Assembly (NCBI GenBank): GCA_025594325.1 | Contig: JANHCV010000001.1 | Coordinates: 2,170,001-2,234,000 of the forward strand | DNA length: 64,000 nucleotides | Origin: Blastocladiella emersonii ATCC 22665 | Taxonomy: Eukaryota; Fungi; Blastocladiomycota | Reading direction: 5' to 3' | In this document: piece after piece, positions 14,100-19,769 of the stretch | Numbering within the stretch: the stretch's first letter is position 1 | How the letters are laid out: every line of letters starts with the position of its first letter | Program-made: the position numbers and the translations under genes | Notes under the pieces: model-generated | Seen by the model: only the letters and a program-made list of their open reading frames with translations | What the model was told of the DNA's origin: nothing | The model's database searches: none

Positions 14100-15590
14100 T
14101 TACAGCGGATCGCCAGCGTACGAGCACAGCTCGTTGGTGCCCTTCTCCCACGGCGCGCACCACCCGTGGTGGTAGCCGTCGAACAGGAAGCGCTCGTACA
14201 TGCGGACGTGGTCGCGCATCATGATCTCGGTCATGCGGCGCGCGCCGTCCTGCTTGTTGAACCACGGGTGCGTGATGACCTTGCCCTGGCAGTAGCCGTC
14301 CTTCCATCCCCACCACCCGTTGGCCTCCATGCACGGCGCGATGATGAAGTCCTCGCCCTCGCGCAGGGTTGGCCGGATGTAGCGGTTGAAGACGGTCTAC
14401 ACGCACGAGTCGAGGGTAGTCAGCGACGTGCGCGAGTCGCAGTGTCGCGGTCGAGCAGCGCACCTGCTCGTTGTACAGCGTGGTCTTCCACTGCTCGCAG
14501 TCCGGCTGGTCGTCGGGGCACGTCATGAGCTTGCGCAAGGCGGTCTTGGCGACGGGCGTGCTGCGCGCGATCCAGAACCCCGTGTTGGTCGCGTTCTTGT
14601 TGGCCTCGGGCTGGTCGGGCGGGTCCATGGGCAGCAGGAGCGAGGCGCGCTCGTGGAAGCCCCAGCGCTTCATCATCCACGCGATCGACTTGTCGGGCTG
14701 GGCGACGAAGGCGTCGCCGTCGAGGAACACGACAATGTCGTAGCGGTGCAGGGCGTCGTAGATGGCCTTGACCTTGGCCCAGGTGCCGTGCCAGCCGGGC
14801 GGCGCGGCGATCTGGACGCGGCGGTAGTCGTAGCCGTGGCGCAGCGCGTACCAGGTGTGGTACATGGCGGAGGTGGTCATGTAGACGAGCTCGTGCGGGT
14901 CGTCCTTGACGTCGGCGAGGCGCTGCAGCGGGCGCGAGTCGGCCGACATGATCAGGACGCGCTCCTTGCCCGCGTCGGCGGCGTGCTGACGCGTGCGGCG
15001 GTCCCAGGGGAGACTCACGGCCGCAGCGGGGTCGGAGCCGGCGGCCATGTCGTTGGCGCGCCACAGCTGCGCGACTACGTCCGACGCGTCCCTGATGGGC
15101 CGCGCGGGATCGATGCCGTCGAGGCCCGACTTGGGCGACACAGCGAGCTTGGCTTTGGGAATGACGGGCATGTCGACGCCGGGTCGCTGGTATGTGGAGA
15201 CGGCGATCAGGACGAGGAGCAGCGCGAAGCAACCGAAGCCGTAGAGGATCGAGCCGCGGTTCGTCGCGATCCAGGCGCGAGTGCTACACCGTGGCCCAAC
15301 GACGCGTGAGAAACTTCCTGTCTTGCTGTCCTCTCAACGAGAGAGCAGCTGCGCGCGTACGAGAAGCGCTTGGGACTGCGTAGGTCCGTGTCAAAGGCAA
15401 AATCCATGTCGGTTGACAGGCGTGGTAGCGACGCGCTGTCGTCGTCATCATCATCGCCGTGAAAGTCGGAGCCGTTATCGCTCCCACTTGCGCTGCGATA
15501 GCTCGGGCTGGTCGGGCGGCCGACGGGCGTGTACGCGCCGGCGGCGGTGCCCGGGACCGGAGAAGCGATCCAGTCGGGGCGCGACGCCAT
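14100..15590 (-). CDS. Type II membrane glycosyltransferase, GT34-like (GMA12/MNN10 family), 3 exons, ~448 aa
   Basis: Exons 15590-15361, 15283-14464 and 14396-14100 join in frame through GT-AG introns of 77 and 67 nt. TM segment ILYGFGCFALLLVLIAVS. Motifs WAKVKAI, VVFLDGDAFV (DxD) and NTGFWI. Confidence 0.8.
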
Positions 15591-16029
15591 GGTCGGTACG
15601 TGGTGTCGATGCGTAGAGAGTTGCGTGTCTTCGTGCCGTGCACAGTGCTGTGATCCAGAGTGGTCGGGGAGCGGAAGCGAGCGGTGGGTGGGCGTCAGGG
15701 GCCCCGGGACTCTGCCGTGGCGCGCGGCGCGCCGCAGGTTGAAACCGCGTGGCGGATCGCCCAAACGTGACTCTTCTGTCCGATCGCTCAGGGCGTCTCA
15801 CCCTGGTCCGCTCGCCAGAGCGTGCGGGCATCGCCGCCTCCGCCACGCCGCCGCCCGCTCCCCTTGGCGACTTCTCTCGCTGCCCGCCCTCACCCGCCCG
15901 CGACGCTGCCCGTGCGCCTGCCCACCTGCTCCCACCGGAAGCCCGCCGATCCGTGGCAGCCGCAGTGACAGCCGCAGCGCGCCGCTCCCATCCTCGCCAC
16001 CGCGCTCTCCTCCTCCCTCACACACTGCA

Positions 16030-18433
16030 ATGCATTCCAACGACTGGTCGGCGCGCCGGCCGACCAAGCTGAACATGACCGGCGCGGGCCCGCACGAGGA
16101 GCTCCTCCGCGAGGAGGGCGCCGTACTGTACGACCTCGACTCGCCCACGCGATCGACGCACTCGCAGCCGCACGCCAGCGCGCCGCACGCCCACCACCGC
16201 CTCGGCACCGCCGCCTCGAGCGACCGCGCCAACCTGCTGCCGGGTCCCTCGGGCGGCGGCGGCGCCATGTCCGGCTCCGCACCACCCTCGCCGTCGCTCC
16301 CGCTCGGCGGCGCCGGCCTCGGGCCCGCCGCCCCGCAGCCGCCCAAGGTATCGGCCGCCGAGGCCACCGTCTTCGTCATCGCCAACGTGCTCGTCAGCGT
16401 CGGCATTGTGCTCGTCAACAAGCTCGTGCTCGCCACCTTCCCGCGCGCCCTGATCCTGACGCTGCTGCACCAGGCCTTCTGCTGGGCCTCCACGCGCGGC
16501 CTCGAGCGCGCCGGCCTGCTGTCCATCCCAACCGGCGTCCCACGCCGTGACGCCTTCATCGTCGGCGGCGCCCTCGTCATGGGCCTCTTCTTCATGAACC
16601 TGTCGCTGTCGCTCAACTCGGTTGGCGTTTACCAGCTGACCAAGATGGCATGCCTCCCCACCATTGGCGTGCTGCAGACGATCCTCTTTGGCGCGCCCGT
16701 GCCGAGCCGCCCGACGCTCGTCGCCCTCGCCCTCGTCCTGCTCGGCGTGTTCCTCTCCACCAAGCACGACTTCGCCACCAACCTCGCCGGCCTCGCCGCG
16801 GGCGTCTTTGCCGTCGGCTTCACGTCGCTGTGCCAGGTCACGCTCCAGTACATGCCGTCCTTCAAGGAGGTCAAGGGCATGAAGTCGGTCGCCGTGCTCG
16901 CCCCCTACACCACCATCGTGCTGCTCCCGCTCGTCCTCTTCGTCGAGCTCCCGCTCATGGCCCGCAGCTCCGAGTCGATCGTGTCGCAGCTCGTCGGCGC
17001 GCCGTGGTTCCTCATCACCGTGACCTGCGTCCTCGCCCTCGCCGCCAACTACCTCGGCAACACGCTCATCCAGAAGACCTCGGCCATCACCTACAACGTC
17101 GTCGGCCACCTCAAGACCATCCTCATCGTGTGCGCCGGCGCCGTCATGGACCCCGCCGCCAACGACCTCTCGGCCCTCAAGATCATCGGCATGACCGTCT
17201 CGCTCGGCGGCATGGCCATCTACGCCGCCCGCTCCGCCTTCAACCGCGCCAGCGAGTCGGCCCGCGCCCAGGGCCCCGCCGTCTACTTTGCCAAGCAGTG
17301 GCGCCAGCACCGCGGCCTGCTCCTCGGCGGGTTCGCGTTCCTCGTCGCCCTCGCCGGATTCGCGCGCCTCGCCTCGCCCGCGTCCTACGCCGACCAGCTC
17401 GACCTCGACCCGAACGTGCGCCTCGTCAAGGTCGCTGCCCTCGACGGCGGCGTGCGCGATGCCGGCGACCTCGCCACGCAGCTGTGGAAGGTGAACGACG
17501 CCGTCGACGGTAGCGCGGGCGACGCGTCGATCGCGTGGGACCGCCGGCGCAAGCAGCCGGGCGCGGTCCGCGGCAAGGAGCGCGTCCTGATCATGTCGTC
17601 CGACTCGCGCCCGCTGCAGCGGCTGTCCGAGGTCAACGACGACCCGATGCAGCTCAACTTCATGACCATGTCGGCCGTGTACAACACGTGGTACGCGCTC
17701 CGCCACGGGTACGACTACCGCCGCGTCCAGATCAGCTCCCCCAAGGGCTGGCACGGGACCTGGGGCAAGATCAAGGCCATCTACGACGCGCTCCACCGCT
17801 ACGACCTCGTCGTGTTCCTCGACGGCGACGCGTACATGGCCCAGCCCGACAAGTCCCTGCCCTTCCTCATGGAGCGGTGGGGCTTCCACGAGCGTGCTTC
17901 GCTCCTGCTCGCTGCCGAGGGGCCGAACCAGCCGCACCCGAACGAGAACGGGACCAACACCGGCGTGTGGATCGCGCGCAACACCCCGCTCCTCAAGCAG
18001 TCCCTCCGCGACATCATGGACTGTCCCGAGGCCCAGGGCGAGTGCGCGCAGTACAAGACACAACTCTTCCATGAGCAGCTATGTCCTTTCGACGCGATTT
18101 GTATAACTACCACGATCACGTACTCATCACATCTCGACTTTGTAGACGGCCTTCAACTTGTTCATCCGACCGAAGCTCCGCGAGCACGAGGACTTCATCG
18201 TCGCCCCGTGCGACGAGGCCAACGGGTGGTGGGCCAACGGGGCGTGCCACGGTCTCTACATCAGCCACGCGTGGATGGGCAAGCTCGACATCGTGGAGCG
18301 CATGAACGCGATTCTCCTTCGCGACCACGTCCGCCTGTACGAGCGGTTCTTGTTCAACGGCTACCACCACGCCGACTGTACGCCGTGGGCCAAGGGTACC
18401 GACGAGCGGTGTACATTCGCGGGCGAGGACTAG
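16030..18433 (+). CDS. Fusion protein: 10-TM nucleotide-sugar transporter (TPT/SLC35E-like) + TM anchor + GT34-like glycosyltransferase domain, ~778 aa if 18079-18145 is spliced
   Basis: One uninterrupted frame from ATG 16030 to 18078. It covers NST motifs (LNSVGVYQLTK, TSAITYNVVGHLKT) and then GT motifs (WGKIKAI, VVFLDGDAY, NTGVWI). The last exon, 18146-18433, is homologous to the paralog's last exon. Confidence 0.85.
18079..18145 (+). other. Putative 67-nt intron with a non-canonical CT donor (CTATGT...TGTAG)
   Basis: It has the same position (after ...EQ), phase and length as the canonical 67-nt GT-AG intron of the paralog (14397-14463). Removing it restores the homologous C-terminal exon. 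Confidence 0.65.
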
Positions 18434-19769
18434 TCGCACCTCGTCCGTGTGCCCGACCAAGTTTTGGCCAGCATCAAGGTTTCTCTTTGCATTTCTCTCT
18501 ATATATCACAGTTAACGATCACTTGCAGCAACAAACTGCCTGGTTCTTTTGCGAAGTGCGAACAGCGAGCTGGCGTAGTGGCGCAGCCATGGACGCGTTG
18601 CGCCACACAGTGACTGTGAGTGACGTCATTCGCCTCAACACCGCGGCGCCTCGACGCCCCAGCGTCGACTCGAACACCACCTCCGACGGCCTATGAAAAC
18701 TCCAAGAGGCTGTTTTCACGTAGATTGACGTCGTGTACAAGGTTAGCTGGAGCGGTGGCGCGTGATCAACGCGCGGACACCGCCCGCGAGTCGCTCAACC
18801 ACATCGTGCGATAAGCGAACCAAGGAGACCGACGTGTAGAGACACCAAGAAACGTATATAGATATAATCCATGAAAAACCCATCATCGAGTGCCCTCCTA
18901 CTGAGGCGTCACATCAGGACTAACCCGAAAGGAACCGCCGTCCTCGCTTCCGGTCGCCGGCATCGAGGACCCCATCTTGTCGGTCCGAGCCAGCCAAAAG
19001 AGAAAGAACTCCATCATCATCGAGACCTCGAGCGCGCCGCCAACCCACCCGAAAGGCACCGTACATCTCTTTGTCACAGGTGGGGTCAGACTACGAGGAC
19101 CCTCCATCTTGTCGGTCCGAGTGACGATGCGGCGCGCGAGTCTTTGGAGCGGTACGGACACGCGCGGGGCCATGGACCGACCATGGTACCACCCGTGCGC
19201 GCGCGGCCGGTAGTTGCGGAACAGGATGCGCACACGCGCACGCGTGCCGATGATGGGCGACGACGTGCGGGCGGCGGCTTCTACACGCGAGGAAGCGTTA
19301 GTCGAGGAGCGTGGGGTGCACCCAGAGTCGGATCGGTACCTTCGATGGGCGAGAGCCGGGGTCTTGATCAGGCCGTCGTGGCGCTTGAGGATGATGACGG
19401 CGCGCGAGAGAGCAGCCCTTGATGATCGTGATCCTGACGAGACCGGGCGCGCGAGGCCGACGAAGTGCAGGCGACGGGCGACTTGGTGTGGTCGATCAGG
19501 TTGTCGGCGAGCAGGTGCAGCGGCAGCGCGAGCGCGAACACGGGTCGGTCATGGCAAGGTACTTGGTGGTGACGAAGCCGAGAGAGCCGCGGCCGAACGC
19601 CGATGTTGATGGCCGTGGTGGACCACGATCATGGCGACGAGGTGACGGTGCTGCTCCTTGATCGAGCCTTGGTGCGTTGCAGTGGGTGAGAGTGGGCTGG
19701 GATCACGATCATGGCGATGAATGGTTGGTGAGGAAGGAGAGAAGAGGGTAGCGGGGACCCAGGCCGAGC

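Follow-up and report, generated by a model that had tools for sequence, protein, structure and literature searches.

A nucleotide-sugar transporter and a GT34-like glycosyltransferase domain in one reading frame of Blastocladiella emersonii: a probable ancient gene fusion of zoosporic fungi

In the mammalian Golgi, nucleotide-sugar transporters and glycosyltransferases form non-covalent assemblies, for example SLC35A3 with MGAT enzymes (PMC6453868; reviewed in PMC9368800). In that review the words 'fused' and 'fusion' refer to tags and engineered chimeras only, not to natural fusions. The transporter SLC35E3, which will matter below, is poorly understood (PMC12666321). This work concerns a gene on the forward strand of a 64,000-nucleotide stretch of the genome of Blastocladiella emersonii ATCC 22665 (the window; all coordinates not otherwise labelled are positions in it). 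A single stop-free frame, running from an ATG at 16030 to 18078, encodes both a nucleotide-sugar transporter and a glycosyltransferase domain, and it is a 100% match to GenBank protein H9P43_000816 (726 amino acids). We believe this gene is probably a real and ancient fusion of the zoosporic fungi, made of an SLC35E3/URGT-like transporter, a linker, a helix that was once a signal anchor, a flexible stem and a GT34-like GT-A domain. To the first-pass annotation of this DNA, which was made from the letters alone, no description of such an architecture was known. Our literature search, with subscription journals outside its coverage, likewise found no description of a natural transporter-transferase fusion under either the architecture or the locus tags. 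The database entries of the fusion proteins are hypothetical proteins or carry automatic names, and the fusion is apparently undescribed in the literature.

The join between transporter and transferase is genuine coding sequence that needs no splice in B. emersonii. We say this because the frame is free of stops, because contigs from sequencing runs match it exactly and because its codon bias is unbroken. In every window of 30 codons between about 16069 and 18048, linker and 11th helix included, the G+C content at third codon positions (GC3) is 0.9-1.0; upstream of about 16069 the codon-position GC signal is absent. Four DNA runs were found, all from the same sample. Contigs of the two deeper ones cover 17076-18900 with zero substitutions or gaps against the assembly. 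A stop or a frameshift in the linker, which the first-pass annotation had named as fatal to its idea, was looked for in these contigs and none was seen. The two low-depth runs have single-base deletions elsewhere, and one of them (X3) lacks a base at each of 16656 and 17876 and has a T>C change at 16809; these differences are absent in the two deeper runs and are probably read or assembly errors. A Rosetta-stone fusion should have both modules in one frame at the DNA level, and here the transporter, the 11th membrane helix and the GT-A domain with its DxD motif do lie in one frame, just as had been claimed. The further claim of one intron-free frame is right for the join between the modules only. 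It fails for the 3' quarter of the transferase, where the frame changes between 18078 and 18146 across a 67-base intron.

The transporter module occupies residues 109-406 (16354-17247). Judging from its profile match, motifs and modelled fold, it is a member of the TPT/nucleotide-sugar transporter family within the drug/metabolite transporter (DMT) superfamily, and transport activity is predicted. Ahead of it is a low-complexity tail of 108 residues (16030-16353; GC3 at least 0.93 from residue 14) that precedes the first modelled helix and is predicted to be cytosolic. The Pfam TPT profile (PF03151) matches residues 121-398 with an E-value of 5.7e-12 and 46.1 bits against a cutoff of 30, and the match spans profile positions 12-290 of 291. 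Both of the transporter signatures quoted in the first-pass annotation are present, at residues 195-205 (16612-16644) and 350-363 (17077-17118). That annotation also read ten hydrophobic segments and an 11th, and the AlphaFold2 model of the fusion (residues 95-683) agrees. It has ten long membrane helices in residues 109-406, with predicted local distance difference test (pLDDT) values mostly above 90, and one further helix that spans the linker and reaches residue 448; beyond it the model has a stem of low confidence and then an alpha/beta domain.

Foldseek places the transporter closest to SLC35E3 (25-26% identity, template modelling score (TM-score) by hit 0.80-0.86) and to URGT1-6 and UXT1-3 of Arabidopsis. 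Among solved structures it is nearest to Vrg4 (PDB 5ogk, TM-score by hit 0.79), and there are further fold matches to the triose-phosphate translocator, SLC35B1 and the CMP-sialic acid transporter. A sequence search of the PDB found only Vrg4 for the transporter (E-value 0.13) and nothing for the transferase. A word-indexed search with the transporter part alone gave no matches, probably because hydrophobic words swamped it, and the subfamily is therefore named from the fold search. Two lysine motifs of the clade, YQLxK in helix 4 and GHLKT in helix 9, are kept in the fusions of B. emersonii, its sister species B. britannica, an environmental relative and the chytrid Synchytrium. In B. emersonii GHLKT stands in the place of GALNK, the GDP-mannose motif. 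The automatic UniRef name 'GDP-mannose transporter' attached to an Allomyces orthologue is therefore unsupported.

The first part of the GT-A glycosyltransferase domain (residues about 506-683, 17545-18078) carries the DxD motif as FLDGDAY at residues 596-602 (17815-17835), and it ends in an invariant EQ. The two Asp of the motif are themselves invariant in the family. B. emersonii keeps all of the invariant transferase residues (8 of 8) and 10 of the 11 near-invariant ones. The fold was modelled from an intact paralogue, H9P43_000815, using 26 homologues (pLDDT 86.5, predicted TM-score 0.84). Its top Foldseek matches in the PDB are chlorovirus A64R (E-value 8e-11) and XXT1 (2e-9). In Swiss-Prot they are Mnn10, the alpha-1,2-galactosyltransferases of S. 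pombe (Gma12), the XXTs and galactomannan galactosyltransferase, followed by the GT77 xylosyltransferases. The label 'GT34-like' given by the first-pass annotation therefore stands at the level of the fold (A64R, XXT1, Mnn10, Gma12); how it fares against the Pfam threshold is taken up below.

Between the two modules lies a short basic linker (residues about 407-428, 17248-17313) with several Arg and Lys and a GC3 of 0.97. It is intron-free here, and most of the orthologues have a phase-2 intron at the same place. The 11th membrane helix follows (residues 429-448, 17314-17373); it has a hydropathy peak of 2.04, it is a helix in the model, and in alignment it coincides with the signal anchor of the type II protein H9P43_000815. 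The hydrophobic helix and the DxD are both where the first-pass annotation had seen them. Next comes an acidic stem (residues about 449-505, 17374-17544), predicted to be disordered, with more Asp and Glu than Lys and Arg right after the helix.

This arrangement has a consequence for topology. Transporters of the Vrg4 type have both their N and C termini in the cytosol. Because the transporter fold has both ends cytosolic and the added helix makes the number odd, the transferase domain should, by analogy, be in the lumen of the Golgi or endoplasmic reticulum (ER). The charge bias points the same way: the Arg/Lys-rich linker would be cytosolic and the acidic stem lumenal. In the transferase domain an N-x-T site is conserved and no fewer than four cysteines are nearly invariant. 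These features, together with the homology of the anchor, are compatible with a lumenal catalytic domain.

Homologues were sought with HMMER over 1.84 billion representatives and with the word-indexed search. Both modules are found in one protein in at least seven genomes, B. emersonii included. The others are Allomyces macrogynus (AMAG_06423 and AMAG_02609, 732 and 729 amino acids), A. arbusculus (P0158, 733), A. javanicus (P0160, 732), B. britannica (BC828DRAFT_403819, 796), Synchytrium microbalum (SmJEL517_g06269, 719) and an environmental organism from a JGI sample (P0003, 728) that has a second fused copy. The junctions of these genes can be compared directly. The environmental gene is one open reading frame with an in-frame phase-2 intron (GTATGT..CTAAC..TAG) in the linker. 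The second copy in that organism (L008:2923-5179) was called as a 374-residue transporter and a 392-residue transferase with a 47-base overlap; the two calls are joined by a phase-2 intron (GTGCGT..GCTGAC..GCAG), and the split is the work of a prokaryote-style gene caller. The gene of Allomyces stays open from end to end, with a phase-2 intron (GTACGT..AG) in its linker. In B. britannica the phase-2 linker intron (GTACGC..AG) contains a stop, and the transferase exon itself is without a start codon. The Synchytrium junction is within a single exon.

The modules also exist as separate genes. The transporter stands alone as AMAG_06469 in Allomyces, with no transferase within 4 kb, and as H9P43_002291 in B. 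emersonii. The transferase stands alone as H9P43_000815 and in Auricularia and Exidia. Fusion across species combined with separate existence is the other mark of a Rosetta-stone pair, and it is what we find. In the transporter tree a single clade unites the modules of the blastoclad fusions with the transporters that stand alone in Allomyces and B. emersonii; its Shimodaira-Hasegawa-like approximate likelihood ratio (SH-aLRT) support is 100. This clade is nested in a wider chytrid clade with a support of 96.

Some of what the searches turned up belongs beside this comparison without being part of it. A Catenaria protein of 1153 amino acids, with a multi-helix N-terminus and a transferase domain, was considered as a degenerate fusion and rejected; its N-terminus aligns with the transporter at a probability of 0.3%. 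At least one of the environmental 'stand-alone' transferases in the tree (P0006) is the 3' half of the second fused gene, split at its junction intron, so a repeated origin of stand-alone copies in that organism is no longer proposed. A metagenome scan with a tighter alignment found one environmental locus, with the transferase only; broad alignments gave no usable conserved stretch. In Allomyces macrogynus a nucleotide-sugar transporter gene of another type (PF04142; L001:876-2109) is found on the opposite strand, some 1.9 kb upstream of the fusion. The public Synchytrium model (L002:5797-8862) adds a Cys-rich repeat tail after an intron of about 2.3 kb and drops the end of the transferase; tblastn extends the transferase sequence to 5890, and the 3' end of the public model is doubtful.

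We can now ask whether two adjacent genes have simply been merged by an error of assembly or annotation. That public models err is clear, since the B. emersonii model is wrong at its 3' end and the Synchytrium model has its doubtful 2.3-kb intron. However, the contigs of two separate runs agree with the assembly without a single difference over 17076-18900, the B. emersonii junction needs no splice, and the architecture is found in at least six other genomes. The first-pass annotation was right that this is not a gene-model artefact; it recurs in three species of Allomyces, in B. britannica, in the environmental relative and in Synchytrium. We consider an artefact effectively refuted.

It could also be argued that the locus makes two proteins, so that the fusion is transcriptional only and a type II transferase is freed by an internal start or by proteolysis in the linker. 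The linker and anchor do resemble the N-terminus of the stand-alone paralogue, and there are Met codons in helix 10 (residues 391 and 397), upstream of helix 11. However, there is no Met from helix 10 to helix 11, and the codon bias continues unbroken through the linker. The relatives are also difficult to fit to this idea, for in Allomyces and the environmental organism, as in B. britannica, the transferase exon lacks a start of its own and is joined on by a phase-2 intron. Two proteins from this locus seem very improbable to us, and we keep to a single fused polypeptide.

The paralogue bears on how such a polypeptide may have arisen. H9P43_000815 is a truly stand-alone type II transferase of 448 amino acids on the opposite strand (14100-15590), and it adjoins the fusion gene head-to-head. 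The divergent intergenic region is about 440 bases long (15591-16029), between the first codon of the paralogue at 15590 and the ATG of the fusion at 16030. Mapping by tblastn gives coding exons at 15590-15360, 15291-14464 and 14396-14103, followed by a stop codon. The paralogue is 64% identical to the transferase domain of the fusion, and the two are sisters in the tree with support of 100/97. One of its introns is in phase 2 and precedes the anchor by 11 codons, the very place of the junction intron in the fusion orthologues.

We suggest the following history. The 11th helix would be the former type II signal anchor of the glycosyltransferase, and the fusion probably began when a transporter gene, using the phase-2 intron of a type II transferase gene that lay downstream, came to be spliced onto the second exon of that gene. 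The fusion would then have been inherited in the Blastocladiomycota, and in Synchytrium it would have been either inherited or independently formed. B. emersonii would later have lost the junction intron, leaving the single frame. The product would hold a transferase in the Golgi or ER lumen, attached 1:1 by a tether to the transporter that brings in its donor. Coupling would come about through enforced co-localisation and stoichiometry, not through a sealed channel, and the nucleotide by-product could be recycled locally as the antiport substrate. The donor would most likely be a UDP-sugar. The URGT and UXT transporters carry UDP-galactose, UDP-rhamnose and UDP-xylose, and GT34 enzymes use UDP-galactose, UDP-xylose or GDP-mannose. 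Because the donor sugars of the relatives of both modules overlap, we favour UDP-galactose or UDP-xylose by analogy, with low confidence.

It is important to realize that a number of observations weigh against this account, and the 3' end of the gene supplies the first of them. The last 95 residues of the transferase and the stop codon are in a second exon (18146-18433), with a GC3 of about 0.9, 60% identity to the last exon of H9P43_000815 and the conserved Cys, Gly, His and Trp all kept. The intron in front of it (18079-18145; 67 bases, phase 0, 43% GC) ends in TGTAG and begins with CTATGT; compared with GTATGT, the consensus in fungi, the first base is altered from G to C. The paralogue has a homologous 67-base GT..AG intron at the identical codon, between NEQ and T. 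No in-frame GT..AG alternative in the fusion gene preserves the conserved residues. We tried GT at 18042, 18051 and 18083 and GC at 18078 as donors, and none joins in frame to the sole AG (18144-18145). The GenBank model of H9P43_000816 manages to splice canonically only by dropping 52 conserved residues. It removes 18042-18264, a 223-base GT..AG segment of 57% GC that uses another AG (18263-18264), and the invariant EQ and several conserved cysteines are lost with it; this 'intron' was probably annotated to get round the CT donor at 18079. Because the only intron of the transferase begins with CT, it is doubtful whether the last 95 residues are spliced on correctly in this strain. On the other hand the second exon is open, its codon bias is kept and so are all of the conserved residues, and the lesion is therefore either recent or tolerated.

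The strongest form of this objection accepts the fusion as ancestral and real, and holds that the ATCC 22665 copy is decaying. The change from G to C at the first base of the intron would block splicing, the lumenal domain would be truncated or out of frame, and H9P43_000815 would supply the transferase activity. Several findings speak for it. CTATGT at 18079 is matched exactly by the contigs of two DNA runs, the homologous intron of the paralogue is canonical, the intact paralogue is only 440 bases away, and B. britannica is already without the transferase catalytic residues. However, with exon 2 open, GC3 at about 0.9 and every conserved residue in place, the loss would have to be very recent. 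In our opinion decay is unlikely, and it deserves to be taken seriously all the same. The tethered fusion described above is the reading we continue with.

The other points against it concern the relatives, the transcript and the transferase family. The Allomyces fusions are without the helix-4 and helix-9 transporter motifs and sit on a very long transporter branch. Their transporter part is still clearly homologous (hhalign E-value 1e-32), and Allomyces also retains an intact stand-alone transporter. In B. britannica it is the transferase half (L004:6299-7519) that has lost the DxD and EQ, with 1 of 8 invariant residues left; from its sequence it looks like a pseudo-enzyme domain on an intact-looking transporter. 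B. emersonii, the environmental organism and Synchytrium keep the motif sets of both modules. Because Allomyces and B. britannica have each lost the key residues of one module, obligate coupling is not a general property. The fusion may not always be a two-activity enzyme, and one half may be only an anchor or scaffold in some lineages. A search for RNA runs listed none, and one full-length mRNA is a prediction. Pfam Glyco_transf_34 (PF05637) matches the fusion weakly and below threshold (E-value 4.8e-4, 20.4 bits against a cutoff of 23), over residues 519-610 and profile positions 6-95 of 238 only. H9P43_000815 scores 24.4-24.7 bits, just above the same cutoff, and one relative matches PF03407 rather than PF05637. 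Because identity to GT34 proteins is 12-16% and the Pfam score is at or below threshold, the transferase is best seen as a separate family near GT34 and GT77, not a proven member of GT34, with glycosyl transfer as its predicted activity.

The last two points concern function. The stem of about 55 residues after helix 11 is disordered in the model: its pLDDT stays under 50 over model residues 350-386 and 393-413. The first-pass annotation had proposed a substrate-channelling enzyme, and this part of its proposal was pure inference that finds no support here. A stem modelled in this way resembles a flexible tether, not a docked or rigid channel, and tethering is favoured. Sequence, moreover, cannot determine the donor sugar.

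A broader claim would be that in zoosporic fungi one polypeptide couples the import of nucleotide sugars directly to glycosyl transfer, perhaps recurrently and not as a one-off. We put this forward tentatively, with rather more doubt than belief. Two leads touch on recurrence. The first is a single open reading frame of 1245 codons from an unknown AT-rich eukaryote (P0149; L005:182-3919, a Logan contig of run DRR337518). It encodes a nucleotide-sugar enzyme of the RmlD/NAD-epimerase type (residues 1-320), a TPT transporter whose motifs are of the same type (387-650) and a region with a weak likeness to GT61 (994-1101; E-value 3.5e-4, below threshold), and on these domain matches it could be a synthesis-transport-transfer fusion. 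The second comes from the ESM Atlas, where the clusters nearest P0003 by features are fungal proteins of 650-900 amino acids, with scores of 0.85-0.87. They have either a PF04142 transporter domain (Basidiomycota and Ascomycota) or DUF3431, and enlarged transporters may also exist in Dikarya.

If the design is truly recurrent, one would be able to read the substrate of orphan SLC35E3-type transporters from the partner to which they are fused, and nature would have provided a test of whether proximity of transporter and transferase matters for glycosylation. Whether Golgi transporters and the glycosyltransferases they supply form physical units has been debated on the basis of interaction assays in mammalian cells. 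A natural covalent fusion kept in the Blastocladiomycota and a chytrid is independent, evolutionary evidence that the pairing is useful, and it offers a simple test system in which the fused protein is compared with a split version. The link between an SLC35E3/URGT-type transporter and a GT34-like domain also narrows down what is likely to be the substrate of this transporter clade, itself poorly characterised, and of a transferase family without an assignment. The half-losses in Allomyces and B. britannica, the adjacent paralogue and the splice-site lesion in B. emersonii would together record the fusion, fission and decay of one transporter-transferase unit.

How does the fusion compare with the systems that are known? 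The SLC35A3/MGAT assemblies share its proposed logic, a donor transporter beside the enzyme that uses the donor, but they are made of separate polypeptides and belong to other SLC35 and glycosyltransferase families. SLC35E3 and the plant NST-KT proteins (URGT1-6 for UDP-rhamnose/UDP-galactose, UXT1-3 for UDP-xylose) share the ten-helix DMT fold at 24-30% identity and TM-scores by hit of 0.76-0.86. They stand alone at about 310-350 amino acids, whereas the B. emersonii fusion has its 108-residue N-terminal tail and about 370 residues beyond helix 10. The yeast GDP-mannose transporter Vrg4 (PDB 5oge/5ogk) is the best likeness among solved structures and the reference for a topology with both ends in the cytosol, but it is only 17% identical to the transporter module, with a sequence E-value of 0.13. 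The GT34 enzymes (Mnn10/Mnn11 of S. cerevisiae, Gma12/Gmh of S. pombe, plant XXT1 (6bsu) and galactomannan galactosyltransferase) and A64R of PBCV-1 (2p73) have the GT-A fold with DxD in common with the transferase domain. They are only 12-16% identical to it, and the type II topology is the one seen in its stand-alone paralogue.

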